NCBI GenBank assembly: GCA_029953675.1
Contig: JAMWBK010000002.1
Span: forward strand, 1,488,001 to 1,552,000
Direction: 5' to 3'
DNA: 64,000 nucleotides
DNA from: Rhodosorus marinus CCMP1338
Lineage: Eukaryota; Plantae; Rhodophyta
In this document: piece after piece, positions 32,105-61,979 of the stretch
Position numbering within the stretch: the stretch's first letter is position 1
Layout: each line of letters starts with the position of its first letter
Position numbers and translations under genes: made by a program
The notes under the pieces: model-generated
What the model was told of the DNA's origin: nothing
The model's input: the letters and a program-made list of their open reading frames with translations, nothing else
Database searches by the model: none

Positions 32105-33001
32105 GGATCGATGAACATTCGAGGTCCAATCCCGTCGGAAAGGAAGGTATCGTCCACTGATCGGCGGTTCGTTGATTCCCTTTCGCTAAGACCTCTACCG
32201 CGCCACGATGTTCACCCTACCTTTCTGGCTCTGACGTCGTTGCCGCGGCCCGCGCACCGTTCCAACTGCCATTGGTACTGGTGCATCCAGGTGAGGTGGT
32301 GGTTGGGAGACGATCTCGTGCTGGTCATGACTTGGCCGGGCCGTTCGTTCGTTTTTACCCGGCGCCTTCATCATCTTCCGCCTCGACCCAGATGTCTCTT
32401 CGGGTATCGACACCGCCAATTCGATCGTTCGCTGTAACGATGCCGGGCGTAGAGCTCTTACGTACGTTTGTTGGTACGTCCGTAAACCCATTATGAAGAG
32501 TTGGGGCCACATAAACTCGCTGAGGCACACAGGGTCATAACTTCGGAGATGGTCCAGCGTGAATTCAAACTCCGTGGCGTACTCGTTGACTGTTGACCCT
32601 TCACGTTGGAGTATCCTCGTCAGTTTCACCGCCAATTCTACATCCTGATTGTGACTGGCGAATCGCGTTCGCAGGGCATTTTGTAACGCTGCCCACATTG
32701 CCCGTTGTGTCACGGGGAGGGTGCGGTACCATTCGGTAACGGTCTTTGCAAGCCCTCGAACCGCGGTGAAGAGTAAGTCACTGTCCTCCTCGAGGACATA
32801 AACGGCCTTCAAGTGCTCGAGCTCGCTTATGAAGGTCTCGACATCTGAAGTACCGTCGAAAGTCGGGGACTCAGATTTCTTTGGTAGTCGTCCCGATCGA
32901 GCTCCTTGTTGTTGTTGTAGCTGTTGCTGCTCCTGCAACGCTCGCACAAGCTGCTCCGTCATCCGCTGTTGTCGCTCTAGTAGTTGAGCAACCGCGGGCA
33001 T
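32105..33001 (-). mobile_element. Intact Ty3/Gypsy gag ORF (32195-33001, 268 aa), followed by a truncated start of pol in another frame
   Basis: SPTFDGTSDVETFI, AKTVTEWYRTL, WAALQNALRTRF, LQREGSTVNEYATEF, FIMGLR and the PVPMAVG (PxPMxxx) tail are typical retrotransposon Gag motifs. No internal stops. Confidence 0.88.
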
Positions 33002-33239: not shown

Positions 33240-33660
33240 GGTGCTATTTTTACAGACACTGAGCGACTGTACCCAGTTCACGAGCGGGAAATGTACGCGA
33301 TTGTGTATTGTCTGTTCAAATGGCGACACTTCCTGAAGGGAGCCCGGACTACGGTGTTCACGGACAACGCCGTGCTCACCTATATGAACACGAAGGTACC
33401 GCCCTCGCGGCGGATGACCCGTTACCTGGAAAAACTATCTCGGTTCGATTACGAGATAAAACACCTGCGAGGCAGGTCGAACGTCGTGGCGGATGCGTTG
33501 TCACGATTGGATCGAGTAAATCTGTTGACTACGGCGCAGCTTACGACGTATGTGCGAGAGGGAAGTGAGACAAGCCTGACCGCCGACGAGCAATCCGTGA
33601 TGCGCAAGGAGATGGAAGGCGTCGTATTTGACGCTGTGACGAGGTGGGACCGCTCCGTTC
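33240..33660 (+). mobile_element. Intact fragment of Ty3/Gypsy RNase H and linker
   Basis: ERLYPVHEREMYAIVYCLFKWRHFLKG...VFTDNAVL...SRRMTRYLEKLSRFDYEIKHLRGRSNVVADALSR. Confidence 0.92.
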
Positions 33661-33845
33661 GTTAAATTTACGAGCACCTCCTGGAACGTCCGGTTCCACT
33701 GTTCCGCTGTCGAATTCGTCCGAGGATGGTAACTGCTGGTAAATCGCTGGGCAGTAGGCAACAGTCGCAGGTACTCCTCCACCACTATTGACCGGAAATT
33801 AGCCCCTCGGTCGGTTAATATCTGTACTGGAGCTCGGTATGGACA
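33660..33845 (-). mobile_element. Intact short fragment of Ty3/Gypsy integrase core, inverted relative to the adjacent RNase H
   Basis: APVQILTDRGANFRS...FTSSYHPRTNSTAEQWNRTFQEVL contains the second D and the E of the DDE triad. Confidence 0.88.
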
Positions 33846-33849
33846 CACG

Positions 33850-34990
33850 CTTCCGGCATCGCGGAAGCTGCTGCGTCGCTTCGTCGATGCCCCAGGCAAA
33901 TGTACTCTACTATAATGTGAAGACGATCGATATCTTGTACTGTTCAAACTGTTTCCTCCATTTGAAACAGTAACGGCAGCACCGTGTGTTGGAAATAGTG
34001 TAGAAACTGCCCAGGATATTGACGCCGTGGCTGTGCCGTCGAGACTGCCAGAGGAGGGCGTTTCCCGGTCGGGTCCGGCCCCTTCGAGGACCGATGTAAT
34101 CCAAAAAACCCTTTCGTGGGACATACATCGGGACTCGTATGCCACCCTTCTGAGTTTACCTTCGTGCTCGGCGTCGACTTTGGCTCGCCTGCGCGGTTTG
34201 GGGGGGAGTCTCAGCTCCCGTTTCTTCACGGTCATACCTGCGTATCCGCGGTTGGCGCGTACCGATCTCGAACTTCGTGTAAGCTTACGACTTTACCTGG
34301 GCTTGCCGCAACCCCCTTGGCCTGTTGAGCGGGATTCTAGATGCGCATTGTGCGGGGCCAATGTGCCGTGGGGTGATTATGGTGCGCATCTGTTGGCGTC
34401 TTGTGCGGAGGTTCAAGGGGCCCGGACCAGACGCCATACGCGGCTCAACCGCTTGCTTTTCCGCTACCTTCGTCCTCAATCGCTCGGTACGGACCGAGAA
34501 GTGGAGTATGAGGTCCCTCTGGCGGTGGCATCGGAAATTGCTGATGAGAGTGACGCCCCAGCGGTACAGCGGGTGGCGGATCTCGTTGTGACTGACCTCA
34601 ATGCGCGTCGCAGTGAGTACATTGACCTCTCCATCCCTTGTCCTCAGGCGACCAGCTACCTGCCTGCGTCGGCTCGGCGTCGAGGAGCTGCAGCTCGGTC
34701 CATGCGGCAAGTGAAAGATTCGCAGTACGCGGCAGCGATATCAAACCCTACCTTTCGCGATTCGGCGGTGACATACCGGTTCGTCCCCCTCATTATTGAG
34801 TGCTTTGGCTTGATAGATAGTGTAGGTTCTCGCTGGCTGCGAGCTCTGTTTCGCAACGACCCAGGGCGTCTAGATAGTCTGCTCAAGGAGCTTTCTTTGA
34901 CCCTGTGGCGCTCCAATTCTGCTTTGTTTGTGGACGCCCGTCATCAGCGTCTTGTCTCTCGCTTCTCAGGGTAGTTAGCCTCTGAATAAA
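33850..34990 (+). mobile_element. 5'-truncated RLE-type non-LTR retrotransposon (CRE/MoTeR-like C-terminus: CCHC knuckle + PD-(D/E)xK restriction-like endonuclease)
   Basis: Frame open from about 33916 to the stop at 34974: LRVSLRLYLGLP, CALCG...GAHLLASC, RTRRHTRL, EVEYE, VADLVV...IDLSIP, AA...KDSQY, FVPLIIECFG. AATAAA 10 nt after the stop. No RT motifs present. Confidence 0.82.
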
Positions 34991-38598: not shown

Positions 38599-39240
38599 TT
38601 AGCAGCTTTGCTTATTCAGTCGCTCCAGCATCCTTCGGCGCTCCCTGGACCTTCTCGCAGATTCACGGTTTCTCAGCTTGCGCTTGAACAAGACAAGTTC
38701 TCGCTCTTCTGGCGACATGGCCTTGACTTTCGAGGAGGTGGTTCCGCTGATATCTCCGAGCAGGTCGGCAGGGAATTTCTGTGCTTCCAGCGCCCTCTTC
38801 TCCCACAGTGGGAGACCCCTCTTCGTGATCGTCTTCTGGGAGACGTCAGAAAAGCTGTACTTCTTGTGCTCACTTTCGCGAATTCCCTCAGTTGTGTCCC
38901 TTGAGTGATCGCTCAAATCGCTCGACTGCGACAAATCCGAGTACACGTGATCCATACCATCCTCGGGATGGACCCAATGCTTCGGTACAGAGGGATCTGG
39001 TTTCGGATAGTCACTTCGGATCCAGCTTATTCCGAAGCTCGGCACCTCTTGGAGCAAGTCAGATCCAAACTGCGCTCCGAGCACCGCATCCATAGAAGGA
39101 GTTGCAGCGACGCTCTGAATCGGGCTTTCACTGAGTTCGATTACTAACTTCTGCAAATCGGCGACATCACCAAGATCAAATCCCAGCGGTGCACAGTCGT
39201 ACGAACTTCTGTTCATTGTTGAGTTACGACCAAATTCCAT
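38599..39240 (-). CDS. bZIP transcription factor with basic region but very short zipper, 213 aa, intronless
   Basis: MSPEERELVLFKRKLRNRESARRSRERRRMLERLNKQSC*: canonical N-x7-R basic region; stop about 13 residues later. Confidence 0.88.
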   Translation of the reverse strand: MEFGRNSTMNRSSYDCAPLGFDLGDVADLQKLVIELSESPIQSVAATPSMDAVLGAQFGSDLLQEVPSFGISWIRSDYPKPDPSVPKHWVHPEDGMDHVYSDLSQSSDLSDHSRDTTEGIRESEHKKYSFSDVSQKTITKRGLPLWEKRALEAQKFPADLLGDISGTTSSKVKAMSPEERELVLFKRKLRNRESARRSRERRRMLERLNKQSC

Positions 39241-40883: not shown

Positions 40884-43429
40884 TCAGTACGCTCTCCCAG
40901 CAGGATTAGACCCTCGTCCAAAGCGCTCGGTCCCAAAATCGTTTGCGTTTCAAAAAACCAAGAATTTATTTTAACTCAATTCAATTTTTCTTGGGTTCTA
41001 TAGGGAGTGCGTGTTGAATTGTCTTGATTTCCAAATGGTTCTGCTCAGCCTGCGAAAGAGGACTTTATCTAACAATCGAGAGGGGTTGTCTTTCTTCGAA
41101 TATTTTTGGAAATGTCAGCCCTACGAACATCACCATGTCATCATTGAATTCGGCCACCCATTGGCCTCTTCGCCGAATAGAATTCCTCTAGTCTTATATT
41201 TACGAGACCAACGACCTTCCCATGCACACCATTCGCTGGAGAACGGAGTTCCGCAACTATTATTGGTTCTCTTACCCGAACGATGAATTTATTTTCATTT
41301 TAATAGGGTTCGTCGCTTCTGGCACACCCCGCATGGAGCTCGAGGGAAGCCGGTTCATCGGAAAAAAGGGGTTCACTAGTCCCAGTAACATACGTTGGAG
41401 CTGCAGATCGTGGATTACAATTCGAAAGAAAACGATCTGGTTGAGCACATTCCTTCGTTTCGCAACTTTAAGACGTGAGTGCACGGGACTATTTACTGCC
41501 GCAGTCTGAGACAGTTGTCCATCAAAGAATAGGGGTTTTGGAGCAGTTTGGTGACAATCTATTTTTGGTTTGCAACAGAGGCGGGTTGAAATGTCCGTAC
41601 TAAGTTTGTGTTTATAACGGTGCAGAAGCTAGGCGAGGGAGAGTAGTTGATGTTGGAGGTAGTGTCGAGGCCATGCATTGATCAACCCTACGATCGTCAG
41701 CAAGACAGAGGCTCGGCTCCGTTTATAGTTTGGGGTCGTATCCACTCCATCACCGCGCCTGATCTTGTACTACAGGTACAATCTACACGCTTCATGCGAA
41801 TTGGGTGCATAAGGGGAGGCGGTTCCGACGGCGACTCTTCACCTTTGATGCTTATTGCGCGGTTTTAAACTTAGCGATCTTCCCGCCGCTCGACCACCGA
41901 CTCTCATATCGTCTGCGAAGAAGAGATGTACACTCTTTGTGCTAAATTAGTTTCATGAGAGGCGATGTTTCCGAAGCCCTCTCCTTGTGTCCGATCCTTG
42001 TGATGAGTCTGCGTTCCAAACTACAAGAGCTGGAGTTTGGTAACCGTGTTTATTGGTGGTCCGTTTTCTGGTAGACTAAATACCGTGACTGACCCAATGC
42101 CTCCGTGGTTTCTCTTCAACAGCTCCTGGGTCTGAGTCCTGTTTCTACGGTTTGTAGAAAAGCTCAGCTGCCAATCACACGTCGTGACCAGTCTTCCTGA
42201 CATCCTAGAGGCCCATTACGTTCATCCGGTCAATTGGAGGAAGTTGCAAGAGGATACTTAAATACTTGGAGTTTCCTTTTTGGCTTTCAAGACTACCAAG
42301 CGCAGCAGAATTTGATATCCGCGCCGCGCGCTCGCATATTTTGCGGGTACCGCGCATTAGCGCTCCCCCCTCGATCATCTACGACTGAACCAACTATCCA
42401 AGGGTGCCCTCGAACAATCGTCGACTGAATCAGATACCCAAGGGTACCCTGAACTATTCTGAGCAAACCTGAAAGGGGGTGCTTAGCCTCATCCTCCAGC
42501 TGCTCGCATTAGAATCGGAAGATTCCTCAGCTCCCGTTAATATGGCTCCTTGGCTTCTTTTATCCCTGGTTTCAACGATCTCGTTCTTTGCGTTTGGAAG
42601 CCTAATCCTTAGAGCTGTTTCGTGCAAAGAAGGGACCCTTTTAAATACAGCTCACAGACATCTCGCAGGCGTTCTATCCGTGAGCTGTATTTCTAAAGGT
42701 TTCTAGCATGAAAGGAGGGCGTGGCCCAGCTCCCTTCCCAGGCAACCCTCATGTTTATCCCTCCGACTTGATGGGTCTTAAGTCGACATGGCGTTCTCTC
42801 GGTTTTCCTAATACGGATCTGGCCTAAAAGTACAAACCGCGCTGCGGCTTGTTTCCCATAGTAGGAGCCCTTCGTGGCTCTTAAAGTACAGAGTCTCCGC
42901 CGAATAGACCACAGTCCCCTTTTTGGAGCTCGACGCTGGTTTCTTGGATCCGGCCCTTAGTCTTAATTGAGCGCACCTTCGGTCATCCCCGTCTATTTTC
43001 TACTTCAAGAATCTACTGTGCCTGTCGATCTTCATCCTGCGCCTACTCTCGACATCATCTTTACCCAACCTATCATGCGGATCAATCTTGGAGTTGTAGC
43101 CAGGCATCCAGGTGTGAAGCTCGAAAGTATATAATTATTTTTTGCAGAGCTGCATACGCCCCCTTGGCTGCGAGCTAGAACCGTCACACGAGCAAAACGA
43201 CTAACACTGTACGTATGACGTATGAACAACATTGGGCAAACTTCAAAATAGAGTAGCCTGATACTGCCAACGCGCGATTGTGTCTCCCTCATTGCATCTT
43301 ATCAGCTCCTCCAAATCGTTCAACTTGTTCTGAGAGGGTTAAATATTTCCTTGAAAATGGCAGGCAAAAAAAGCAGTTCAGCCGTAAAGCAAAGAGCAGG
43401 CTAACCGGTAAGTTTCCACGCGGTCCACC

Positions 43430-44621
43430 TTACGAGTATATAATGGAGAGCGCACGTCTCAGTTCTCGGTTTTCGGCGGTGAGGCGCTGAATCTGCTCCT
43501 GCCGTCGCTCCTTTGAGATTCGCGCACTCCTCCTATTCCGAAGAATCTGGCGTTCTCGTCGTTGTTCCGGAGTCAATTTCTTCACCTCTTGCAGATGTCT
43601 CTGGCGAAGCTGTTTTAGTTCGGACCGTGACGCATTTCCAGGGGGGGAAAAAATTGGTGGTTGGCCAGCCAAGAGTTTGTTGCTCGCTATGTCCTCGGAG
43701 GTTGCCGTATTCGCCCTGGGAACGACGCATGTTCACAGTCTTAGCAGGGATGAAAACGTGAAAACCTTTCAATGCCACTATGCACTACTCAACTCACCTT
43801 GAGAAGTCATTGCAAAACACGCCAACACTGCTCAAATGCCAGCAGTCTGTACCTTTCGACTCCGTGCAGGACTTGTCGCAGGACTTCAAATGCTCCAATA
43901 TCCCCTGCAAATCCGAGGAGAGCGGCTCCTCGCATTTGTCATGTGGACAACTAATTTCTCCTTTGAATCCTTGGGTTCTATCCTCTGTCTTGTGCATCTC
44001 ACTACTGGGTGCTGTATGGTTGTCTTTTAAACCTACACAGCCCCACAATCATCTTCAGTCCGTGTCAGTCTGTATGCACAATCTGCTTGCAATTGAACCC
44101 ACAACCATCTACTGGCATCTTAAACACATCTGAAAGCACTGCGTCGAAGTCATTCAAATGCGTACATTGTCCGTCTTCAACACTGTCGCAGAATTCCTTT
44201 CCGATTAGAAAAAAAGCGACGAAGAAAGGAAGTTAGGAAAGCAAGTTGTTCTGTACTATAGGTAGTTGCTAGCGCCCAGTATGAGGGACCGCTCAGTAAA
44301 TTTGAACAGACAAGGTTATGCCTATATCCAATTATTCCTTACCAAGCATTCTTCTAAATGGCGCGGAACGATCTGCGGATTGTTTAGCGCTTTTGAGCAA
44401 GACTGATGCGGACACTTCTTCTTGTCCCCCCAGATTTTGGAAACGCTCTCTTCGTATTTTGCGAGATGGTCACAATTTGCTCCTTCCACAACTTCCGCCT
44501 CGCCGCTTCCTCCCTCGTGACATGTCGATGGACAGTTTTCCAGATGCGTGATTAAGTCATGAAGCGGATACATTTCCGAACTTTCCCCATGGGGACATTT
44601 CAACAGCGACGAATCCGACAT
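43430..44621 (-). CDS. Triple Cys/His-repeat (TRAF-zinc-finger-like) protein fused to a C-terminal bZIP; 4 exons (44621-44343, 44196-44106, 44032-43798, 43715-43430), 296 aa
   Basis: ATG at 44621. Introns GTAAGG..GAAAG (phase 0), GTTGTG..TGTAG (phase 1) and GTGAGT..CCCAG (phase 2) join four separate ORFs into one 891-nt frame. C-terminus LTPEQRRERQILRNRRSARISKERRQEQIQRLTAENRELRRAL is a bZIP. Confidence 0.82.
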
Positions 44622-45823
44622 CTTTCCACAAAAATAAATTCAACCACTCTCCTTCTCAACTTCAAAGAATGAAACAGGCACCTCAAACCGAAACCAGGAA
44701 GCTAGGCTCTTCAAACTTTTTTTCCCCCACTCACTTGCTTTTCATAGCCCCGCAGGAAAAAAAAAATTCAAAGCGTGCAAATTATGTTAGCAATCTTCTT
44801 TCCCATTCTATGCAAACACTCTCTACGACAGGAACCTACCAACCCACTACACACCCAACCCATCTCTCCCCCGGCCCACCCCTATCCTCGCCCTATATAA
44901 CCCGACGGTCCATAATCGTTTATGAATCAAATTCCTTACAAACCCAAAAAAAAACATCTAAAACCGGCACCTCATCGACAGGGCCTTAGCAACAGATGAA
45001 GCGCCCGCAGACTGTGCCTAAAAAACCTGCACAAGGACCATATCAATCAATATATCAATGTAATTTCGTATTTTGATTGATGATCTGTTTTTTGTTTTGT
45101 TTTTTTAGTGAAAAGGGTTCTCGACAGCGGGAATTTTGTTGGGAACAGGGCGGCGGTGTTCTTTTTTTGGCTCTTTGCGATCAATTTAGAGCATAGTAAA
45201 GTTAGTTTGGAATGGAGAGTTGTTTTGGACTCTGAAAAACTGTTTTTTAGTATTGGGTCGGTCTTAGATTGGCTTAATGTAGGTAAGCTATGTTGATCGT
45301 GTGGCTGACTTTGGCGGTTGGAGAAAGTGATCTGTCGGAAAAGGGACTTTCGCGAACATCGGCCTTTTTACCGAACGGTTGTTTGGCTACGAATAAATGA
45401 GTCAGCTGGGTTCTGCAGTAGGACCCTTGGAGTGCAGACTCTTGGTTCGGCTAACGCTGTTGATGATTCTTTCAGCGGACTGTAGAAACTATGAGGCAGA
45501 AGGGAACAATACGTGGCTGCCTAAAAAATCCACATAGTATTGTTCCGTAAAACCTGAAGCCACCCGTCCCTTGGAGTTGAGCACTCTGGATCCGTCTAAG
45601 AAGACGTCGCTGAGATGAACGCCCGAGGGAGAACCCCTTTGAACGACAAGTAGAGTCGCAGCAGCCTAGAACACAGCCAGAGTTTCCGGTCTTGATTTCG
45701 TGCTATACCGCAAAACTCCCCGGGGAGATGCTATGGGTGGGGGGGGGATCTTGGTCCAAGTTTTATGAAATTCCTCGTCTTGCGGCAAGTATGAGGAGCG
45801 AACTGGGCCAACCCGTGCTGGAG

Positions 45824-46954: not shown

Positions 46955-48216
46955 CTAGAGGGCTGCGGCATTCAGTGCCTCTATGGCTTCTTCTGGGGAA
47001 AGTCTGTAGCAGCGTTTACAAAACTCGCAGGTGGCCTCGACATGGCCCTGCTCTGCGATGAGGTCCTCTATGTCCTTTCTCCCGAGGAGTACAACCGTTC
47101 GACGGACGCGCTCTCTGCCACAACTGCAGTAGTACTTCGGGTAGCTCTCTGCGACCTGAAGTGTTTTCAGTCCGTTCAAAGCTTCTTCTGTGAGTAAGCG
47201 CTCTCCCCAAAGAATTCTGAGAGGCCTCAGCTAATCCGAGTTTTCAAAACGCGTCGTGCCTTGGAACTAAACCCAACTCTTGCGTGCAGAAAATTTTGAG
47301 AAGAACAAACCTCAAGCGGATCCAGATCCTTCATAAGCTTTCCAATGATGTCCGTGGCGCTCATCCCGCTTCGGATCAATTCCGTTGGTGTCATTTTGAG
47401 GCTCTGCACGTTCTCCTCCACAATCCTCGTTGAATCCTCCGTCGCTCCAGGAAGCATGGACACCAGGAAGCCACCCGCTGCCATCACTTCACCTTTCTTA
47501 TCAACGAGAACACCTAATCGTAAATCTCAAAAAAATCAATTAGCTGCGTTTCCAGCGCTTTGCACTGCGCGTCCTAGCTCTAGCGCACCTGCTCCGAGCG
47601 CTGAAGGCGTCTGCTCTGAATCAGCGAGGTATGACGCAACGTCTTCGGCCACCTCCCCTGATACTATCGTAGTGAGTCCAGTGTAAGGATTTTTCCACAT
47701 GGGATGGTTTCTAACAACAGCTAGGATGCCTCTCCCGACAGCCTTGCCAACGTCCAGGTGCCCCTCGCTGTTCGGTGGCAGTACCACAGATGGATCACCC
47801 ACGTACCCTCGAACTTCTCCCCTTCCATTTGAAATTGCAACTGTTGTCTTCAGAGGGCCATCACCTCTGAGCTCCAACTGCACAGTTTCGCCTTCCTTCT
47901 TGCCAGCTGACAGTAGCAACCCGCATATCATTGCCCTTCCCAGCGCGGCGGAGGCAACCGGACTAGTCTTCTGAACACTTGCCGCAGCATTCACAAGACC
48001 AGTCGCAGTAACCACTCTACAGCTTACCTCCCCGTTCGCCGCAATCGTCCGCACAGTCAAGTCACCAGGAATATGCCGGTTCAACATTGGCCACGCGGCC
48101 GGCAACCCGTCATCCGATCCGTTACCATCTTCATCTTCCGCTCGTATGGAGCACCTCGCCAAGCGCTTTAATCTTCTATCCAAACTCAAACCATATAGTC
48201 CGACAAACCCTACCAT
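46955..48216 (-). CDS. hslO: Plastid-targeted Hsp33 redox-regulated chaperone; exons 48216-47589, 47513-47311, 47155-46955; 343 aa
   Basis: SPVASAALGR, RGDGPL, VRGYVGDP, SGEVAEDVASYLADSEQ, AAGGFLVSMLPGA and the redox-switch motifs YYCSC...TCEFC. N-terminal MVGFV...RCSIRAE looks like a transit peptide. Confidence 0.93.
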
Positions 48217-49874
48217 GTTGCCCAAGAAACACTCGGTCCCTAAGGCATCAAAATCCCAACCCTCGCTCCGGAAGACTGTTCACCGCCAAGGATAAACTCT
48301 ATCCGTCACCAAGGAACTCCAAGCCCGTTTCAGATCCTAAACTGTAACCTCAATCATAGAATTTGAAATCAGAACGGCCATTTCATAGAGACCGCCTATC
48401 TTGACCATTGGGTTCAGCAGGACAACAACCGATGTATGGCAATCTCAATCCCGTTAAACCGTACCACCGTCTCCACGCGGTCGTCTAACAACCCTAGAAA
48501 ATGGCATGACAAAACACTCTGACCTCCCCGAACTAGAATAATACAAATACATAGTTATATTTTGAATAAACTGAGTAATACTACAAATTACTATGAGACA
48601 AGTGGTATGAAAACTTGTACTAATTCGTTGTTTGGCGTATGGATTATTTTTTATTGAATTATAAATTATTTAATCAAATAATAACCTTGCGCGTGTCTTG
48701 TATTTTCGAATTGTAATATTGCACGTGTCCGATAACACGAAGGGAGGTGAAGGTATCCATTGGGTTGGGTGACCCTCCCCATCATGAAGGGTAAACTTTT
48801 GAGACTGTTTGATCAAGAAACGGTGTGAGACACAGCTGTGCACTGGTTCAATCGAACCTTCGACGTCTCATGCTCCGAGTGCGAGGATTAAGCGCGAAGC
48901 TAAAAACGAATTAGCTATCGGCTGTTGGTTTGGAGGACTGCCTTGTACTGTGGAGGAATCTTGGAGCTTGAAAAGCGTTTTCACATGGCTAAGCTAACCC
49001 ATTCCCGCACTCCGGTCAGTCTTCTTGCTCAACCAACATGATAACATCTTACCCACCCAAGTTGGACCTATCAACGCGAAATACAGTCTTCTAACCTTCA
49101 AAAAAAAGCACATCGTATCGCTGGAAACCTCCTGTCTAGACAGACTCCTGCCCCATCTTAAGGGTAACCTTAGGGCTTAAGCATGTTTCCTAACCTCCCC
49201 ACCACAACCGCGGTTAGGTATACCCTACTAGAATCCTAAGACTAAGAACACTGATCATAGGGCCTTTTGCTGTCCTTGTCAGATCCATCGCGCCTCCAAT
49301 ACGCCAAGTAGACCTGAAAACGTCCTCGCGCTCCCCCACCTCAACCCCCAAGTTTCGTTCTCAACGTGTAGCTAGCAGTGCCTCCCAAAGTCGGACACGT
49401 GTCTTCACAGTGTCCGTTAATAGAAATTCCCCTAAAACCGGATTCTCTCAATGTGGGACTGTCAAATGTACCACGCTAGCGTATGACACTGTCTGGAATT
49501 GAGTGTAAGAAGACTGGTTGGGGAGTGCGAGGGGGGGAGGGCGCAAGAGGGAAGAGATAATTGTACAATGGAATTGTCCTTTCCTTTCTGTAGTTAAGCT
49601 TCGGGGTTTTGGAGAGTCCTCATTTTGTCGTAAACAGAGGACGTGACAGTTTTATATATATGCTTTTGCGTTTATGGTTGAGCCATCCTCTGGACAGAGG
49701 TGCGGGATTCAGAAGGAGGGGAGAACCTGTGAGGACCTGAGGAAGGCGTATCTGGATATTAGAGAAGATTCTATTCTTTCAGATGTCCTGTTGCACGTGT
49801 TCAATGTGTAGAAGCCGGTAGGTGTGCATTGTCCTTTTTCGGGTTGAGAACACTGTGCCATCTTCTAGGGAGAA

Positions 49875-52628
49875 ATGGGGCGGAAGGCAAACGAAACCAG
49901 TTTGCTGAATCACTTGGACGATAGCTCCAAGAAATACGATAATCTTCGGAAGATTCAGGCAGATGTAGTTGGAGCGTTTAAGCTGAACAAGGAACAGGAT
50001 GAACATGCCCGCGGTGAGGAGTTTCAAGAAGAGCAGGACCGACAGCGCGAGATTCGTTTACAATTGTGGAATGCGAGAATATTGCTTTGGTGGAATGATA
50101 TGGCGGACACTCTGGTTACATCGTTATGGACTTGGCCCATTTTGAGCCTCTGCGTGAACTTTCTCATTGGAGCTGCGGTTGCCAGAGCGGGTGATGGAAC
50201 GGATTCCGGCATCTTGTTCTTTTTCAACTCGGACTCGACAGAAGCGGGGCAGTTCTTCAGGTTCATATGTTCTATGGTCATGGGACTTACGGGTACGGTC
50301 TTCTCGCTCTCGATCGTCGCGTTTCAAGTGGCTGGAGTGACATACTCTCCACGAATGTTGTCGGATCTGATGAGAAAGAAAGCCACGAAAGTTGTTCTTG
50401 CTATTTTCCTCGGTACCTTCTCGTACTCGTACGCTGGTCTGCTAGCCCTGCGCAACACTGACGAAACACAGTATTCCCCAACCATTGCAGTCAACGTTTG
50501 TTTGATTTACGTAGTGGCTACAATTGTAGCCCTTGTATACTACTTGGACGCCGTAGTTCGGTTTCTGTCAGTCTCAAACCTCCTCGACGATGTCTCAGCC
50601 AGTACTTGCAGAGTAGCGGAGAGACTGACGAAAGAAATCCCACTCGAGACGACTAAGGACGGTATGGAGGAGGAATTTCTTGACAAGAGGAGCAAGCCAA
50701 GAGAAGATATTGATCTGGAGGACGTCCTTCCCACGGTTCCGGCTGAATATGCACAGACCATTTACGCGTTCAAGTCAGGATACCTGTTGAAGCTGGCTGA
50801 GAAACCAATAAGTTACGTAGCCAGTGCGCATGACGTGGTGATACGGTTTCGTGCGAAGATTGGAGAGTACGTCACGGGTGATACCCTTTTGGCGTGGGTT
50901 TGGAAATATGGAGCAGGTTCAAATCGATCAGAGATCTTGGTCGTTGATGCGCGTATGCGGATTGGGCCTGAAGAACTAGACGCTATCCAGAAACAGGTCA
51001 ACTGGTGTATATCTATTGCGTCGAGAAGATCGATAGAGAATGATATTGGATTCGGGATTAAGCAGCTAACGGACGTTGGTGTAAAAGGAATGTCTCCCGG
51101 TAACCTTGATCCATCTACATCGTGTGAAGCCGTTGATAGACTGGAAAGGGTGTTTGCGTCGTTCTGTAAGAACCGATTTAGCCACATGATACTTACTGAG
51201 GATCTTATCGGGAAATATGCTGCCCGTAAGCGCAGCCGTGACGATACGAGCTTGAGCTCGGATGACGGTAGCCAGAACGGCGGTGTTGGTTTCCCTCCCA
51301 GAACGCTAGTTTGCTTGCCTCGGCGTACATTTGCGGACCACCTTGGCGCCGCGATAAACCCGATGCGGTGGTACGGAAGAACCTCGGTAGTCGTGTGTCG
51401 TCGCCTGCTGTACCTACTGGGAGCGCTTGGTGCTATGTGCGCTCCGTACGGGGAACAGATGGCAACCCGACTGGACACCATTGAAAACTTCATTGAAGAT
51501 ATCCTGAATTCTTTCGCAGAATCGATCCCGGGAGGCACACATAGCGTGGAATTTGAAGCCGTTGAGTTTGCTGCGTTGCATGCCTTTTACCTCATCCATA
51601 GTGGGAAGAGCCGGGGTACTGTGAAGCGGTTTTCAAGGAGCGAGCCAACCCCATCAGAGGAGAACGGAAGCTTCGATATGGATGGGGTGGGTGGGTTTGT
51701 GCCGACGCCTGGCGAGAGAAGGCACGAGTCACGTGACAATGCGGCTGAAGATTCGCTACATAACTTCTCGAGAAGCAGCTGGCCACGGAAGATGGAGTCC
51801 GAGGATGATGAACTGAAAGATATTGGAGAATCAGATTGCAAGGTATCGGAAGAAAGCGACGAGGCAAGAGGAGAGCGGTGTGATAGTGCGTCAAATCACA
51901 CTCCGGCTGAAAGAAAAAGTGCGGAGGTGACGCCGATTAGTACTCGCCTTCCAAGCCGTTCGCGGTCGCCTGACCCCAAGGCAATAATGGATGATGACAC
52001 CTCGCACATAAAATCGTCAGCATCTTTTGTTGAGACTCGGAGCGTTGGGCTCCTATCTGAGGGTACACGACTGCGTTCGAGAAGCCTGTTTTCTAGCGAG
52101 AAGCGTCTCTCGCTGGGCGATCTTCCAGACGAAACCGTTGATGATTTTTCTATGCTGAGCAAAGCGAAAACATTCCTAAGACTTGGAGGGGACCCAGAGG
52201 ACGCCATCCGCTATCTCAACGAGGACCGGTATTCAGACGAGTTCCTCAAAGCTTCGATTGAAAGACGGTCGGTTTCGGCTGTTGTTTTCGAGGATGTCTT
52301 TGTACAAGGGAAAAAGAAACAGGGAACAAAAACGAGAGAAGCGGAAGAGAGGAGAGCTCTGCCGCGAAAGGGCCCCTTACCAGCGTCTGGATCGAAAACC
52401 CTCGGAGCAGGCGGGAGGGGTATATCTGGAGCGTCTATTTTCGCTCGTGAACCACAATCTGTAGTAGAACACAGCGCGAACTCGTCGATCGACGAGGGCT
52501 CAACGACACAGGAGACAAAGCCCCCCCTTCCGAAAAAGGATAAGAAAGCATCGGATGGAAAGAACCCGGAACGAAAAATCACCAAGCATGACCTCCTGTC
52601 CAGATACTTTGCCGGTCAAAAGCACTAG
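49875..52628 (+). CDS. DUF2254-family membrane protein with a long low-complexity C-terminal tail, 917 aa, intronless
   Basis: SLWTWP, VFSLSIVAFQVAGVTYSPR, FLGTFSY, KSGYL, RSIENDIGFGIKQLTDVGVKGMSPGNLDPST and RWYGRTSVVVCRRLL match DUF2254 conserved blocks. Four or five hydrophobic helices. Confidence 0.82.
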   Translation: MGRKANETSLLNHLDDSSKKYDNLRKIQADVVGAFKLNKEQDEHARGEEFQEEQDRQREIRLQLWNARILLWWNDMADTLVTSLWTWPILSLCVNFLIGAAVARAGDGTDSGILFFFNSDSTEAGQFFRFICSMVMGLTGTVFSLSIVAFQVAGVTYSPRMLSDLMRKKATKVVLAIFLGTFSYSYAGLLALRNTDETQYSPTIAVNVCLIYVVATIVALVYYLDAVVRFLSVSNLLDDVSASTCRVAERLTKEIPLETTKDGMEEEFLDKRSKPREDIDLEDVLPTVPAEYAQTIYAFKSGYLLKLAEKPISYVASAHDVVIRFRAKIGEYVTGDTLLAWVWKYGAGSNRSEILVVDARMRIGPEELDAIQKQVNWCISIASRRSIENDIGFGIKQLTDVGVKGMSPGNLDPSTSCEAVDRLERVFASFCKNRFSHMILTEDLIGKYAARKRSRDDTSLSSDDGSQNGGVGFPPRTLVCLPRRTFADHLGAAINPMRWYGRTSVVVCRRLLYLLGALGAMCAPYGEQMATRLDTIENFIEDILNSFAESIPGGTHSVEFEAVEFAALHAFYLIHSGKSRGTVKRFSRSEPTPSEENGSFDMDGVGGFVPTPGERRHESRDNAAEDSLHNFSRSSWPRKMESEDDELKDIGESDCKVSEESDEARGERCDSASNHTPAERKSAEVTPISTRLPSRSRSPDPKAIMDDDTSHIKSSASFVETRSVGLLSEGTRLRSRSLFSSEKRLSLGDLPDETVDDFSMLSKAKTFLRLGGDPEDAIRYLNEDRYSDEFLKASIERRSVSAVVFEDVFVQGKKKQGTKTREAEERRALPRKGPLPASGSKTLGAGGRGISGASIFAREPQSVVEHSANSSIDEGSTTQETKPPLPKKDKKASDGKNPERKITKHDLLSRYFAGQKH

Positions 52629-54288: not shown

Positions 54289-56340
54289 ATGAAGAGCCGT
54301 AGAAGTGTCTTTCGGCATCGAAGCACTAGGGAGCGAGGTCGGAAGCGATCCACGACTTCTTTCGTATCTGGAATCGCCGTTGGTTTGGTCCTATTTTCGT
54401 TGGTAAGCTTGAGTGGACTGTTCAGAGTCGCTCATGAGGAGGCAGCATGGACCGAGAAGCAGCGCTCATCTCATGCTCTCAGCGACTCGAGAGATGATCG
54501 TGGTGTTGATGTGGGTGGAGGGATCGATGAGGAGGTGGGTCGTGAGTCACCGCGGCCGTTTACTATTGTGATTTTGGCGATGAACAGGCCATGGGCACTG
54601 AAGCGTCTGCTCGAGTCTATTAATCAGGCATACTATGGAAACGAACGCGTCAACTTGGACATTTTTGTGGACATGTTAAAGAACCAAACTCATGATTCGG
54701 AAAGCGTGAGAATCGCGGATTCATTCGTATGGAACAGGGGCTCGAAACGCGTGATTCTGAGAACCAGAAACATGGGCCTCGTACTCTCCTGGTTGACCTG
54801 TTGGAATGCAACATCGGACCAAGACCGTGCTGTTATTTTGGAAGATGATCTTGAAGTTTCCAAACTGTACTACCGGTTTCTAAAAGAGGCTAATGAAAAG
54901 TACAATGACCTTGAGGACCTGGCAGCTTATTCTCTGCAACGAGCTACTCTTATTCCTCTCAACGACGGGAACAAGCACATTCAACATGGTTCAAACCCGG
55001 CCTATCTGTACAGACTCGTCGGAACATGGGGGTTTTCTCCAAAGGCGAAGAAGTGGACGGAGTTTCAGAACTGGTTCTTTCCACGGTTTGATAATAAAGA
55101 CTTCAAACCATTTGTTGAAGGACTCTCGATCAACAAGTGGTACAACGGACGAGAATGGTCGCACTGGTTTCTCAAGTTTTGTGATGAGGAAAGGCTCTTC
55201 AACTTGTACGGAAATATGCCGAACAAAACGACGCTCTCTGCGAACTGGAGGGAGCCCGGAGAGCACTATGGATCAGGTCCTGCAAAGGGAAAGGAATTCG
55301 AAATCTTTGCTGAGCGACCGGATTACGATTTTCAGTTTCCGGGTGCAGACCATTTGATCAGAATCGACTGGAATGGACGTCTTCATCCCGATTTTCACTC
55401 CGTGCTATACCGAGAGAATGTCGACGAGATGAACAAGTTGATCGAGTATGGAAAGCGGGGCGAGTTTCTGATGCTTTCACTGTACAATGAATATTTTGTT
55501 ATCTGGTTGAGGAACTTTTTGTGTAATGTCGAGCTTCTTAAAATCAGACCGAAGCAGATTGCTCTGGTGACGAACGATAAGAAGGCACATGAGCAGATGC
55601 AAACCGTGGAAGGGGTCCACAGCATCTACCTCAAGTTTCCAGGAGGTGAAGCGAGCCGCGGAAATACGTTCTCCACTCCAGGATACATAGAATTGATGTT
55701 GAACCGGGCCCGACTTGTCCTTGAGCTATTGCGACACGGTGTGACTACGCTGCTAGTAGATCTGGATCAGACGTGGTTGGAAGATCCAATGCCATGGGTG
55801 AAGCAACTTGCCGATAGGAATGACGTGGACGTGGTTGGCACAATCACCACTCAGAATGAGCTCGCTGGCAACTTTCTGTACTTTCTCCCGACAACGGGCG
55901 CAGTGAACATGTACAAAGAGGTCGTCCGCCACTTTGAAAAGGCCTTCAAGGACAAGAACATCGGTGATGGCGGCTTGGGAAATCGGAAAGTCTCTCTGCC
56001 CAACGACCAGACGCTCATAACGTCAATTGCGCTCCGGAACAAGGAGTGTGAGCTCGAGCTCCTTGACCGCTTCCAATTCTGTGACGGTCGATGGTACAAG
56101 GGTGCTTACTCCAATGATACGGTGAGCCTCCGGCCGGTAATGATCAACAACAACTTTGTGGAGGGCAATCAGGAGAAAATTCACCGAGCAGTAGGCTTTG
56201 GCCATATGTTCTACAACAATGAAACTAATACGTGCAATCCCCCGGAGAGACTCCGAGCTTACTATCAGGGCAAATCCATCTATTATTCGTGGCAGGATGT
56301 TCTGGATAGGAAACGGGGAGCAGACGTACTCAAGCTTTGA
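54289..56340 (+). CDS. Type II membrane glycosyltransferase with two GT-A domains (GT2-like + GT77/nucleotide-diphospho-sugar transferase-like), 683 aa, intronless
   Basis: Basic N-terminus and one TM helix (IAVGLVLFSLVSLSGLF). Domain 1: ILAMNRPWALKRLLES, LDIFVD, GLVLSW, AVILEDDLEVSKLYY, GTWGF. Domain 2: NFLCN, LVDLDQTWLEDP, AGNFLYFLPT, NDQ, INNNFVEGNQEKIHR. Confidence 0.85.
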   Translation: MKSRRSVFRHRSTRERGRKRSTTSFVSGIAVGLVLFSLVSLSGLFRVAHEEAAWTEKQRSSHALSDSRDDRGVDVGGGIDEEVGRESPRPFTIVILAMNRPWALKRLLESINQAYYGNERVNLDIFVDMLKNQTHDSESVRIADSFVWNRGSKRVILRTRNMGLVLSWLTCWNATSDQDRAVILEDDLEVSKLYYRFLKEANEKYNDLEDLAAYSLQRATLIPLNDGNKHIQHGSNPAYLYRLVGTWGFSPKAKKWTEFQNWFFPRFDNKDFKPFVEGLSINKWYNGREWSHWFLKFCDEERLFNLYGNMPNKTTLSANWREPGEHYGSGPAKGKEFEIFAERPDYDFQFPGADHLIRIDWNGRLHPDFHSVLYRENVDEMNKLIEYGKRGEFLMLSLYNEYFVIWLRNFLCNVELLKIRPKQIALVTNDKKAHEQMQTVEGVHSIYLKFPGGEASRGNTFSTPGYIELMLNRARLVLELLRHGVTTLLVDLDQTWLEDPMPWVKQLADRNDVDVVGTITTQNELAGNFLYFLPTTGAVNMYKEVVRHFEKAFKDKNIGDGGLGNRKVSLPNDQTLITSIALRNKECELELLDRFQFCDGRWYKGAYSNDTVSLRPVMINNNFVEGNQEKIHRAVGFGHMFYNNETNTCNPPERLRAYYQGKSIYYSWQDVLDRKRGADVLKL

Positions 56341-56970: not shown

Positions 56971-58452
56971 TCAACTATACTCTGAGATGAAACGAGCGTG
57001 GAATTCTTGAAAGCTCTGTGTTAGGTAGTCAAAATCTTCTTCTTGAGCCAGGATGGTTGTCCGGAAGTGAAAAGTGCCCTCCTGTTGACCGAATCCCGAG
57101 CCAGGAACTGTACATATTCCGGTCTCATCCAGAAGCCGGAGGCAGTAGTAAGTGTCTGCCGGAACTCCTGCGGCCTTGGCTGCCACCACAGCTCTATGCG
57201 GGAGACGGATTCGGGGAAATGCATACAGCGCGCCCTCAACAGCATTACAAGTCACACCTTGCATTTTCCCCAGTGCCTCAGCGAGCATCTTGGCCCGCCG
57301 TCTCAAAGACTCGTAGATTCCGCGTACCTCGAGGTGATAGAGTTCGTAGGATGGGTCCCCGGGCCTTGGTGGGTTGGACATAAGCCCCACAAGCATCTCC
57401 CCAGTTGTATTTGAGCACAACGTCGTGGATGCCAGCTTATAGATTTCATTCCTAACAAGAGGATCTATGTTGTTGCAGTGGAAGTAGCCTCCGCGATGAC
57501 CGCATTCACCCACCATGCCCTTTGAAATCGTGTGGAATGAAAAACACTCGAGATCCGAGGCTTGTTTGGACTCCGAGATGACCTTCCTAAACGACACAAA
57601 CTGTCTCCCAGAGGAGTAGACGTTTTCTTGGTAGACTTCATCCGCGAAGAGCACAACTTTCTTCCGTTTGCACCATTCGACGATCTCCAACATGTTTTTC
57701 TCGGAAAGGCATTGTCCCGTAGGATTGCCTGGGTTGATGACCACTAGTCCACGAACTTTACCTCCTGAATCATGTGCTTTATTTCTGGCACGGTCAAGCT
57801 CGTCGAGATCCAGTCCCCATCCCTTTTGCTCGTCGAGATAGTACTCGGCACTAGTTCCATTGAACAGATTGATCGCGGCGGCGTAGATGGGATACTGCGG
57901 TGTTGGTGTTAAAACTGCATCTGCGCTACCTTGTATAAGGGCTTGAAGGCATCTGGACACACCCGCGGATGCTCCATCGGTAAGGAAGATGCTGGATATG
58001 TCGGGTTTCGTGCCGTCCCTCTCCTCAAGGCGTTTGGCAACTTCTTCGCGAATATATGCATTTCCTCTGCTGTCTTGATAGGAGCCGGTGCCTCCCTTAA
58101 AGTGGTTGAGGTACAATCGAGCGCGCTTAATAACATCCTCGGGGAAGTGTCTCCTAGTTGCTTCGTCCTCAAGCAGTCCAGGGTAGTTTACAATCGCCAC
58201 GACTTGACGAAAAAACGTAATCGGCTTTTGTCCAAGTCCATGAGGATTCCCAATATTCGTATAAACTACAGGAAGCCCAGCTTTACTCCTCTCGAGTGCA
58301 GCAGAGTACAAGCGTCCTCGAACAGCATACTGAGCCTTCCGTACGTACGGGTTCATCGTCTCCAGTCGAAGAACAGATGACATTCGTCGACTAAAAAGTC
58401 CATAGGTCCCTCCCATTCCGCGATTCATTGCTCGATTCATCGTACAGGACAT
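56971..58452 (-). CDS. AlaAT: Alanine aminotransferase / glutamate:glyoxylate aminotransferase family, probable mitochondrial isoform, 493 aa
   Basis: AQYAVRG, NIGNPH, PQYPIY, INPGNPTGQ, FADEVYQEN, SFHTISKG (PLP lysine), GECGHRGG, VPGSGFGQ, HFRTTIL. Arg-rich, acid-free N-terminal extension. Confidence 0.96.
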   Translation of the reverse strand: MSCTMNRAMNRGMGGTYGLFSRRMSSVLRLETMNPYVRKAQYAVRGRLYSAALERSKAGLPVVYTNIGNPHGLGQKPITFFRQVVAIVNYPGLLEDEATRRHFPEDVIKRARLYLNHFKGGTGSYQDSRGNAYIREEVAKRLEERDGTKPDISSIFLTDGASAGVSRCLQALIQGSADAVLTPTPQYPIYAAAINLFNGTSAEYYLDEQKGWGLDLDELDRARNKAHDSGGKVRGLVVINPGNPTGQCLSEKNMLEIVEWCKRKKVVLFADEVYQENVYSSGRQFVSFRKVISESKQASDLECFSFHTISKGMVGECGHRGGYFHCNNIDPLVRNEIYKLASTTLCSNTTGEMLVGLMSNPPRPGDPSYELYHLEVRGIYESLRRRAKMLAEALGKMQGVTCNAVEGALYAFPRIRLPHRAVVAAKAAGVPADTYYCLRLLDETGICTVPGSGFGQQEGTFHFRTTILAQEEDFDYLTQSFQEFHARFISEYS

Positions 58453-59754: not shown

Positions 59755-61215
59755 TCAGAAGTCCTCGGCAGCATTGTATTTGCTGAGGAAGCCCTCATGA
59801 AAGTCCATGAAGTCCTTCACGATCTGTTCAAATTCATCTTCAGGGGGCAGAATCGTCGTTCGCAAATGGAAGGTTCCTTCCTTCTGATGGAAACCTGAGC
59901 CCGGGATAGTGCAGATTCCAGTGGCGTCGAGGAGCTCCAGGCAGTACAACACATCAGGAGCAATGTCCTTCTTCTTCGCTGCTTCTACAGCTTCCGCAGG
60001 GATCTTGACGTTCGGGTAGCAGTATAAAGCTCCCTCAACAGGATTGCATGATATTCCCCTCATGGACGAGAACGCGTCGTAGATCATTTTGGCCCGACGT
60101 TTCAACGACTCCAAAATTCCGTTCGTCTCCTTGAAGTAGAGCTCGTAGGATTCGTCTCCTACCTTTGGTGGATTCACCATCATTCCAACGACGAGCATTC
60201 CCTCAACGTTGGCTGAGAGGGAGGTTGACATCACCTTGTACATCTGTTCAACTACGCCCTCCGGAATATTATGGACATGGAAAAATCCTCCTCGCCTACC
60301 GCATTCTCCGACCACCCCCTTAGAAACGGTGTGGAAAGAGATGAGCTGACAGTTCTTCGCCTCCTGGCCCATGTCCTGGACAACTTTCAGGAACGACACA
60401 AACTTTGATCCCTCCGGATATACGTTAGTCTGATAAACTTCATCGGCCAAAATCGCGATCTTTTCCCTCACGCAGAACCGAACGATTGCCTCCATATTAT
60501 TCACAGTCAAGCACTGTCCTGTTGGGTTGCCTGGGTTAATAATAACGATTGCCCTGGGCAAAACCCCGTTGCTCCGCGCTTCCTTCACGCTCCTCTCAAG
60601 TTCAGCAATAGAAAGGCCCCAGCCGGACTCTTCATCCAAGTAGTAGCTGCACTTCGTTCCATTTCGAAGCTCGATGGAAGCTGAATAGAGCGGGTACTGG
60701 GGAACGGGCGTCAAGATGCCATCGCTGCGTCCACGAATAGCGAGGAACAGACATAAAGATATACCCTGACTCGCTCCGTCTGTGAGATAGATGTCTTCGA
60801 ATTTTGCTGGGTACCCGTCGCGCTCCGTCAGGAAATCTGCAACTTCCTGTCGCACGTATGCATTGCCTCTGGAGTCCTGATACGCTCCCGTCCCTCCTGG
60901 CGTGTTCGCAATGTACGTCTTCGCCCTCTCTACAACATCCTTGGGGAAGTGTGAAGCGAGCTCTGGCTGCTCCATCAACGCCGGATAATTGACGAGGGCC
61001 AATACCTGCCTCATGAACGTAATCGGCTTCTGACCCAGAGCATGAGGATTCCCGACGTTCGTATAAATCACCTTCTTTCCACTCTCCGCGCGCTCTACGG
61101 CAGCCTGGTACAGCTTCCCTCTCACCGCGTATTCCGCCTTCAAAACATTCTCGTTCAACGTACTCCGATGCAACGCCAATTCCGTGACCTCCTCAGTCTT
61201 AAGGCCCACAGTCAT
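59755..61215 (-). CDS. AlaAT: Second alanine aminotransferase paralog without an obvious presequence; first ATG at 61215
   Basis: AEYAVRG, NVGNPH, PQYPLYSA, INPGNPTGQ, LADEVYQ, SFHTVSKG, GECGRRGG, IPGSGFHQKEGTFHLRTTILP. Confidence 0.96.
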   Translation of the reverse strand: MTVGLKTEEVTELALHRSTLNENVLKAEYAVRGKLYQAAVERAESGKKVIYTNVGNPHALGQKPITFMRQVLALVNYPALMEQPELASHFPKDVVERAKTYIANTPGGTGAYQDSRGNAYVRQEVADFLTERDGYPAKFEDIYLTDGASQGISLCLFLAIRGRSDGILTPVPQYPLYSASIELRNGTKCSYYLDEESGWGLSIAELERSVKEARSNGVLPRAIVIINPGNPTGQCLTVNNMEAIVRFCVREKIAILADEVYQTNVYPEGSKFVSFLKVVQDMGQEAKNCQLISFHTVSKGVVGECGRRGGFFHVHNIPEGVVEQMYKVMSTSLSANVEGMLVVGMMVNPPKVGDESYELYFKETNGILESLKRRAKMIYDAFSSMRGISCNPVEGALYCYPNVKIPAEAVEAAKKKDIAPDVLYCLELLDATGICTIPGSGFHQKEGTFHLRTTILPPEDEFEQIVKDFMDFHEGFLSKYNAAEDF

Positions 61216-61979
61216 CCTCCCGTACCAAAATCCAGGCCAAAAAAACAACAAAAGAAACACTCGATATCAATCAACCGAATCCCACCCTTACAATCCTTGC
61301 TTCCTACTCTCACAAACCCTTGCTCTTACTCAACACCCTCCCATTTTCACTGCTTATATACCTTGCAACCGCCATATATTTTTCTCCAATCCAAAACACA
61401 CCACATCGCTGCAGTCCCCCTTCGTTACATGTAAGAGAATGTCATTTTTTGAGGGGTTCTGATCTGCGAAAAAATGGCGATTTAGTATCATTGCACAATA
61501 TTTTTATACCGAAAACTGTTCTCGCCATTTTTCGCAGTTAGCCTTTCCATAAAATCTAAAAAATATCTTAGCTATGGTAAAATTATATTTCCAAAACTAA
61601 TCTTCATCTTATCCGATGAGCCAATTATCATCTTCTTAGCAAGATATATTTTTCGAAACATTCTATTTGCCGATATGGTTGGATGAAAAAAAGAAAAAAA
61701 GAGCGGTCGTCCTCAAATTGATTCAAGAACAGCCTTTCGATTGATTCCGATTAACCAATCATGACTCTGATGGGAGTACAAGAACGCTCGTATTTTTTTT
61801 CTAGATTTTAATTGTTCAGTTGCGTTTACACGATTTTCCTGGTTCAGGTGGATTCCATTGAAAACACGTTCGTTTCCCATGGACTGCAGATCCCACGCTT
61901 AAGAATTACTATATAGAATGATACATAACAATAAATAGGAGGAAACCCTTATCTGGAGACTGATAATGCCTCATAGTCC

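Follow-up and report, generated by a model that had tools for sequence, protein, structure and literature searches.

The locus described here lies in a 64,000-nucleotide (nt) window of the genome of the red alga Rhodosorus marinus CCMP1338, to the whole of which all coordinates refer; the window is eukaryotic DNA with a G+C content of 43-53%. Its minus strand carries, at positions 43289-44621, a gene of five exons and four introns (146, 73, 82 and 84 nt, in this order), all with GT-AG boundaries, which encodes a protein of 315 amino acids (aa; residue numbers are those of this protein). Three copies of a Cys/His-rich repeat (R1, R2 and R3) make up most of its N-terminal part and are followed by a C-terminal basic leucine zipper (bZIP). 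This is a single-copy nuclear gene, and no paralogues were found within the window by tblastn and regular expression searches. Over its entire length, the gene model shows 100% identity to the NCBI hypothetical protein NDN08_007776 [Rhodosorus marinus], which is encoded on a 3.48-Mb contig; the nuclear genome of R. marinus CCMP1338 has been available as a chromosome-level assembly since 2023 (PMC10250338). In UniRef, the protein is named "BZIP domain-containing protein", and its N-terminal half carries no annotation. The gene, which the original prediction had taken to be hidden, is thus deposited in GenBank and labeled as a bZIP, and is therefore annotated; the gene and this label are the part that is already public.

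Exon 1 (44343-44621), with the ATG at 44621, encodes residues 1-93, which comprise R1 (C9-P-H11, H26, C30, C34 and C50-D-H52) and the first half of R2 (C70-P-H72, C75, H88 and C92). Intron 1 (44197-44342, 146 nt, GTAAGG...AAAG) divides R2 between C92 and C96, and the second half of this repeat (C96 ... C104-T-H106) is encoded in exon 2 (44106-44196) together with the helix that follows it. Intron 2 (44033-44105, 73 nt, GTTGTG...GTAG) is in phase 1 and is followed by exon 3 (43798-44032), which encodes a poorly conserved linker (residues ~121-147) and R3 (C152-P-H154, C157, H171, C175, C179 and C187-W-H189). Beyond intron 3 (43716-43797, 82 nt, GTGAGT...CCAG, phase 2), exon 4 (43434-43715) encodes a GQPPIF...KKLTPE segment, the basic region with N262-x7-K270, and the zipper heptads L280, L287 and I294. 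Finally, intron 4 (43350-43433, 84 nt, GTAAGG...TCAAG, phase 2) separates these from exon 5 (43289-43349), which encodes the last 19 residues, KYLTLSEQVERFGGADKMQ, with the heptads L301 and F308, and the TGA stop codon.

The evidence for splicing comes from transcripts of related Rhodosorus strains and not from those of CCMP1338. Transcript-derived MMETSP proteins run uninterrupted over all four junctions (P0002, 78% identical, 314 aa; P0003 and P0011, 85%; P0004, 44%, 316 aa), and exon 5 is conserved in P0002, P0003 and P0004. In addition, a 2175-nt transcript contig of a related Rhodosorus (L001, JGI sample 3300016967), with ~84% nucleotide identity, aligns in blocks that start and end at the predicted exon edges. 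Exons 1 and 2 are contiguous in this transcript, introns 3 and 4 are removed at the same positions as predicted here, and 30+30-nt probes over junctions 1, 3 and 4 align to it free of gaps. Intron 2 is retained in L001, with GT and AG at the homologous positions, and removal of the homologous 74 nt yields exactly P0002. Among ~40 in-frame GT-AG combinations that were considered for intron 2, only the pair 44105/44033 fits both the spliced and the unspliced form of the relative. Two other open reading frames (ORFs) of relatives read through the donor of intron 1 (P0006) or that of intron 2 (P0005), and each leaves the family sequence exactly there. Transcripts in which the Cys/His exons and the bZIP exons were not joined had been named as grounds for rejecting the gene; the relatives' transcripts join them across all four junctions, and the test therefore falls in favor of a single spliced gene in which three Cys/His repeats are fused to a bZIP.

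Upstream of the ATG, positions 280-369 of L001 align to 44622-44711 (minus strand), giving a 5' untranslated region (UTR) of at least 90 nt, and the protein of the relative begins at the homologous Met. L001 also runs on past the stop codon. Positions 43241-42668 align to its 3' part at 71% identity (~570 nt), in which the longest ORF is at most 74 aa, so that 42668-43288 (minus strand) is a probable long and fairly conserved 3' UTR.

In the original prediction, four ORFs were joined through three GT-AG introns into a 296-aa protein, and the feature was placed at 43430-44621. Joining 44621-44343, 44196-44106, 44032-43798 and 43715-43430 does reproduce this protein, including the three Cys/His repeats exactly as they had been quoted. 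Intron 4 had been missed: the TAA of the 296-aa model (43432-43430) falls within a strong donor, TC/GTAAGG, at 43433, and the model ends early for this reason. Both the 315-aa match to NDN08_007776 and junction 4 in L001 rule the four-exon model out, and the feature extends to 43289-44621. Because exon 5 carries two of the five heptads, the shorter model also had a very short zipper.

Several isoforms that retain intron 1 or intron 2 are present in the transcriptomes of related Rhodosorus (L001 737-810; P0005, P0006, P0010 and P0012). These would encode one and a half or two repeats without the bZIP. Retention of intron 4 in the window would yield a 296-aa form with a shortened, three-heptad zipper.

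The C-terminal region has the hallmarks of a bZIP. The basic region, RNRRSARISKERR, contains the N-x7-[RK] signature as N262-x7-K270, and the zipper is in register with it, K270-x9-L280 being followed by L287, I294, L301 and F308 (five heptads). Rhodosorus differs from typical bZIP domains (PF00170/PF07716) in having Lys in place of the usually invariant Arg of the basic region; the homologs from Compsopogon and Timspurckia have Arg at this position. A profile of the C-terminal region of the family, searched against the PDB, identified c-Jun, JunD, CREB, BACH1, FosB and GCN4, with E values from 2.8e-4, and these alignments are in register, with profile positions 26-82 matching chain residues 3-59, that is, basic region and zipper. 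Pfam bZIP_1 matches 5 of the 6 family members, with a best E value of 9.8e-5, although each score is below the gathering score. AlphaFold2 predicts a continuous helix at 251-312 with a predicted local distance difference test score (pLDDT) of 80-91. The region thus shares with Jun, CREB and GCN4 the N-x7-[KR] basic region, the heptad repeat of Leu/Ile/Phe that begins nine residues on, and a single long predicted helix, whereas the N-terminal half of the red algal protein is a domain that is not seen in other bZIPs. As judged from its sequence, the protein is a divergent but genuine bZIP transcription factor.

A segment directly N-terminal to the basic region (residues 219-252; 43560-43640, minus strand), with the pattern GQPP[IV]F.PP...KKL[TS]P[ED]E, is common to Rhodosorus and Compsopogon. 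It is predicted to be helical at 232-247 (pLDDT >80), and its invariant [TS]-P might be phosphorylated by a proline-directed kinase.

In the six-frame translation of the window, a loosened form of the first half of the repeat, C.H..[CS]x9-15 H...C, occurs three times, in each case within the bZIP gene, compared with a mean of 0.03 in windows simulated with a first-order Markov model. R1, R2 and R3, each aligned across orthologues, are homologous to one another (hhalign profile-profile probability 95-97%, E values 3e-8 to 5e-10). The previously proposed consensus stands: C-P-H, the His and Cys of H-L-x2-C, the next Cys and C-x-H are invariant in 16 repeats from five proteins, which amounts to seven Cys/His positions and the Pro of CPH. 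The Cys after H-L-x2-C follows three residues on, and once five. An eighth position, the second Cys of CPH-x(1-3)-C, is found in 13 of the 16 repeats and is replaced by Ser or Gly in R1 of Rhodosorus, and the loop ahead of C-x-H varies from 6 to ~50 residues. All 15 Cys and 13 of the 14 His residues of the protein are located within residues 1-205.

Comparison with a related strain gave an overall ratio of nonsynonymous to synonymous substitution rates (dN/dS) of 0.32, with 0.29 for R1, 0.11 for R2, 0.56 for R3 and 0.23 for the bZIP, indicating purifying selection on the repeats; in the linker 121-147, a short segment, the ratio exceeds 1. An AlphaFold2 model of a single repeat, built from the 16-repeat alignment (pLDDT 80), consists of a hairpin and a helix, followed by another, small hairpin and another helix. 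The full-length model is weak (pLDDT 64.6, predicted template modeling score 0.30), with helices after the repeats at 51-64, 105-118 and 188-204 and disordered linkers at 35-48, 121-148 and 199-220, the linker between R2 and R3 having pLDDT <50. An amphipathic helix had been proposed after each repeat. A helix is predicted after all three, and the hydrophobic moment of those after R1 and R2 is above 94-98% of shuffles, but that of the helix after R3 is unremarkable.

To assess how the family is distributed, 1.84 billion representative proteins were searched with a profile of the first 210 residues, and 5.8 billion proteins were searched both with the full-length protein, by word index, and with an N-terminal profile built from five sequences. 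The only matches were in Rhodosorus marinus strains, the MMETSP protein P0004, Timspurckia oligopyrenoides (P0007, UniRef A0A7S0ZF51, 404 aa) and Compsopogon caeruleus (P0008/P0013, 367 aa). In every full-length member, a bZIP at the C-terminus is preceded by three repeats, and the alignments show this predicted architecture to be conserved in three classes of red algae. The searches of 1.84 and 5.8 billion proteins gave no match in sequenced red algae outside these groups or in other organisms, although absence from a profile search is not proof. Within these limits, the predicted module is confined to a handful of bZIPs from a few early-branching red algae. A 54-column profile of the repeat, searched against the 5.8 billion proteins, gave 125 candidates and did not recover the query's own protein; that search is therefore uninformative with regard to single repeats in other proteins. 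Surveys of red algal transcription factors (PMC12567131, PMC8304369) count bZIPs and do not describe the N-terminal domain. Neither Pfam nor the searched literature appears to describe the triple Cys/His module, how it is conserved, or that it is confined to a few classes of red algae.

Searches of Pfam, of PDB sequences and, with Foldseek, of PDB structures all failed to give a significant match to the repeat, in agreement with the initial impression that it belongs to no described family. In Pfam, nothing significant was found for the full protein or for any of the 16 repeats, and neither zf-TRAF nor zf-C2H2 nor SWIM matched any of these even at E values up to 10. Below the threshold, zf-TAZ matched 3 of the 16 repeats (best E value 0.0055), and ZNF512_C2HC was found with an E value of 0.3; in the full protein, zf-TAZ aligns to residues 151-197 with 10.1 bits, below its cut-off of 25. 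Among PDB sequences, the first 23 columns of the repeat profile align to finger 1 of YY1 (CPHKGC...HL). The whole-sequence E value for YY1 of 0.0015 is summed over several fingers, the best single finger having an E value of 0.26, and weaker matches were obtained for Zif268 and GLI.

The last three proteins bind DNA through C2H2 fingers, and their being the best matches to the first half of the repeat profile raises the question of whether the modules are additional nucleic acid-binding fingers that extend or alter the range of DNA or RNA sequences recognized by the bZIP, in the manner of C2H2 proteins with several fingers. Foldseek likewise lists fingers of GLI, ZBTB7A, TFIIIA and WT1, all of them non-significant. 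Several features make this role distinctly improbable: the repeats are acidic, not basic (for example, EECLEFCDSVEDGQ and DKCEEPLSSD), the helix positions that would contact bases lack a conserved basic or polar pattern, and the linker between R2 and R3 is long and unconstrained. Moreover, CCHC variants of the classical finger, such as the FOG type, usually mediate protein contacts. The repeat also departs from the classical C2H2 pattern (PF00096) in that its last ligand is Cys and not His, although the predicted hairpin and helix do fit.

A connection with TRAF/SIAH fingers had also been suggested, and it goes no further than a resemblance in spacing. The repeat shares with TRAF-type and CCHC fingers (FOG-type, NEMO) the C-x4-C-x12/13-H-x3-C spacing, the "CP" at the first Cys and a predicted hairpin and helix. 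Against the TRAF pattern C-x(2-6)-C-x(11-12)-H-x(3-7)-C, R2 fits (x4, x12, x3), whereas R3 has x13 and R1 of Rhodosorus has Ser for the second Cys. No profile or fold search was significant; furthermore, the repeat, unlike those fingers, has an invariant His after "CP" and an obligatory second half, C-x3-C...C-x-H-L with a helix, that has no counterpart there. The suggested resemblance to SWIM fingers (PF04434) is limited to the shared C-x-H end, the C-x-C of that family being missing. The resemblance of the first half is to a CCHC variant of the beta-beta-alpha finger, either classical or TRAF-type, and falls short of membership; the second half is without a recognizable counterpart among known domains.

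With TAZ fingers (PF02135), those of CBP/p300 in particular, the repeats share the recurrent pattern of C-x4-C, helix and H-x3-C, and they give the sub-threshold Pfam matches noted above. TAZ is a single integrated domain of four helices with three HCCC sites that are shared between helices. The red algal repeats, by contrast, have 7-8 ligands of their own and are separated by an unconstrained linker. Since R3 is cut off from R2 by this linker and R1 stands at the N-terminus, each repeat is probably self-contained and not TAZ-like.

The two invariant C-x-H motifs of each repeat (CPH and CxHL) are also relevant to the nature of the metal that would be bound. C-x-H boxes are typical of Rieske-type ligation, and in fungal iron sensors of the bZIP type a [2Fe-2S] cluster is held by Cys-rich regions, so each repeat might ligate an Fe-S cluster, for example, a 2Cys-2His [2Fe-2S] cluster held by the two C-x-H motifs, and not only zinc. 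The predicted fold, a hairpin with helices, is not that of Rieske proteins, no Fe-S family matches in Pfam, and the sole Fe-S protein in the Foldseek list is NsrR (E = 5, probability 0.02), which makes such a cluster highly improbable.

Combinations of a bZIP with a Cys-rich regulatory region in one polypeptide have precedents. The fungal bZIP-type sensors Yap1, Yap5 and HapX carry Cys-rich sensor regions that employ disulfide or [2Fe-2S] chemistry. There the Cys-rich regions lie C-terminal to the bZIP, which is on the N-terminal side, and the proteins differ from the red algal family in this domain order as well as in the motifs. In F-group bZIPs of land plants (bZIP19/23), a Cys/His-rich zinc sensor motif, in which all Cys and His are conserved, lies N-terminal to the DNA-binding domain (PMC9643250). 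The general layout is the same as in the red algal family, for which metal binding is predicted, and the plant proteins are thus a precedent, though not a homologous one, for what had been thought to lack any: a bZIP family with a sensor-like N-terminus. The plant motif consists of two short Cys/His-rich stretches, whereas the red algal one consists of three repeats of ~50 residues with finger-like secondary structure (PMC9643250). Sensor function is established for the plant proteins, whereas in the red algal family it is a possibility. The N-terminal profile, searched against the 1.84 billion representatives, returned only the red algal family, with no plant F-bZIP and no fungal Yap protein, and no Yap1, Yap5 or HapX was found in the homology searches of either 1.84 or 5.8 billion proteins.

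Two metal ions per repeat and a response to metal, redox state or ubiquitin had been suggested in the original prediction, all of which are conjectural. These precedents allow for a role of the repeats as a metal (Zn, or Fe/Cu) or redox sensor that switches DNA binding, dimerization, stability or activation by the bZIP. By analogy with F-bZIPs or Yap1/Yap5/HapX, reversible metal loading, or Cys oxidation with release of the metal, might reshape the N-terminal half. The presence, in the same chain as a bZIP, of seven or eight invariant Cys/His per repeat, in three copies and in three classes of red algae, is consistent with this role, as are the fixed ligands on either side of a C6-C7 loop that varies from 6 to ~50 residues. 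An ORF with a strong match to Hsp33, a zinc- and cysteine-dependent, redox-regulated chaperone (47536-48225, minus strand, Pfam E value 4e-46), lies ~3 kb upstream of the bZIP gene; this adjacency is suggestive with respect to redox regulation and carries little weight in a eukaryote. Known bZIP sensor motifs are short and lie in disordered regions, whereas the red algal modules, with their conserved hydrophobic positions and pLDDT of 80, resemble folded fingers, and no homology to known sensor motifs is detectable. We consider the sensor role possible but not the likely one. A more specific version, in which CPH-x2-C...H-x3-C-x3-C...C-x-H-L is an undescribed two-metal module that defines a bZIP class of early-branching mesophilic red algae (Stylonematophyceae, Compsopogonophyceae and Porphyridiophyceae) and through which metal or redox state directly gates transcription, seems to us unlikely; if correct, it would represent an independent invention of the design, bZIP plus metal sensor, that is found in plant F-bZIPs and in fungal Yap5/HapX.

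The explanation that we favor, and regard as probable, is that of a dimeric bZIP transcription factor in which an N-terminal array of three zinc-binding modules serves as a folded regulatory or partner-binding domain. Residues ~251-312 are predicted to form one long helix that would dimerize through its five heptads and bind DNA through RNRRSARISKERR. Residues ~6-203 would form three homologous modules of 45-60 residues each, in which a beta-hairpin bearing C-P-H-x2-C is followed by a helix ending in H-L-x2-C, a Cys three residues on, the variable loop, and C-x-H-L at the start of a second helix. Each module is predicted to be self-contained and to bind zinc, with the first half providing a CCHC-type finger site. 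The eight conserved ligands per repeat are compatible with two metal sites, the second of which would probably be made up of C6, C7 and H8, perhaps with the invariant His of CPH. In such an array, the metal is probably held structurally, and the array itself probably regulates the bZIP or binds a partner.

Several observations weigh against this explanation. R1 of Rhodosorus lacks the second Cys, so a full CCHC site is not present in every repeat unless the His of CPH substitutes for it. At least four divisions of the ligands fit the spacing, namely CCHC+HCCH, CHCH+CCCH, TAZ-like HCCC+CHCH, and Rieske-like 2Cys-2His with CHCC. The strict invariance of the ligands fits a sensor as well as it fits a structural site. 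Structural comparison gives nothing significant, either for the single-repeat model, for which the top match in Foldseek is a TRAF6 RING-finger construct (3hcu_A; 30 columns, root-mean-square deviation 2.7, E value 4.3, probability 0.08), or for the full-length model, with no PDB match at E <0.75. Pfam bZIP_1 reaches 15.9 bits when the region is scored in isolation and 9.6 bits within the full protein, compared with a gathering score of 27.6. Finally, none of the alignments is deep (4-6 proteins, 16 repeats).

Red algal transcription factors have received little characterization, and regulatory domains specific to a lineage tend to escape attention, since a domain scan registers the bZIP part and nothing else. 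The present case concerns a compact module of 7-8 Cys/His ligands that Pfam does not contain and that, within the limits of the searches, no other protein among several billion possesses. As a predicted domain, it is clean, well supported and lineage-specific, and the general combination of a bZIP and a Cys/His region is not new. If each repeat binds two zinc ions, the module would represent a new zinc finger topology. Should it act as a sensor of metal or redox state, the bZIP-sensor design would have arisen here independently, and the module would offer a handle on the regulation of metal and oxidative stress in a group with a new chromosome-level genome (PMC10250338). If neither is the case, the protein would simply add to the divergent transcription factors that have an accessory domain of their own.

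Several other genes in the window were identified in the course of this analysis. A second bZIP-like ORF (38599-39240, minus strand, 213 aa) is located 4 kb downstream of the bZIP gene on the same strand. It contains a canonical basic region, KLRNRESARRSRERRR (Pfam bZIP_2, E value 0.00096), and no Cys/His repeats; it stops ~10 residues past the basic region with no obvious GT donor, and its zipper might be encoded in a further exon or be missing. An ORF at 32195-33001 (minus strand), with matches to retrotransposon gag and Ty3 capsid-like domains (E values 3.8e-7 and 2e-5), probably belongs to a long terminal repeat retroelement. For the large overlapping ORFs at 33501-34974, Pfam gave no match. 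Two genes for class I/II aminotransferases (56971-58452 and 59755-61260, both on the minus strand; 493 and 501 aa) share 54% identity across 480 residues and look like an old tandem duplication. A 917-aa ORF at 49875-52628 (plus strand) contains a DUF2254 "predicted membrane protein" domain (E value 2e-68), from a family that is mostly known from bacteria, and a 683-aa ORF at 54289-56340 (plus strand) contains nucleotide-diphospho-sugar transferase domains.

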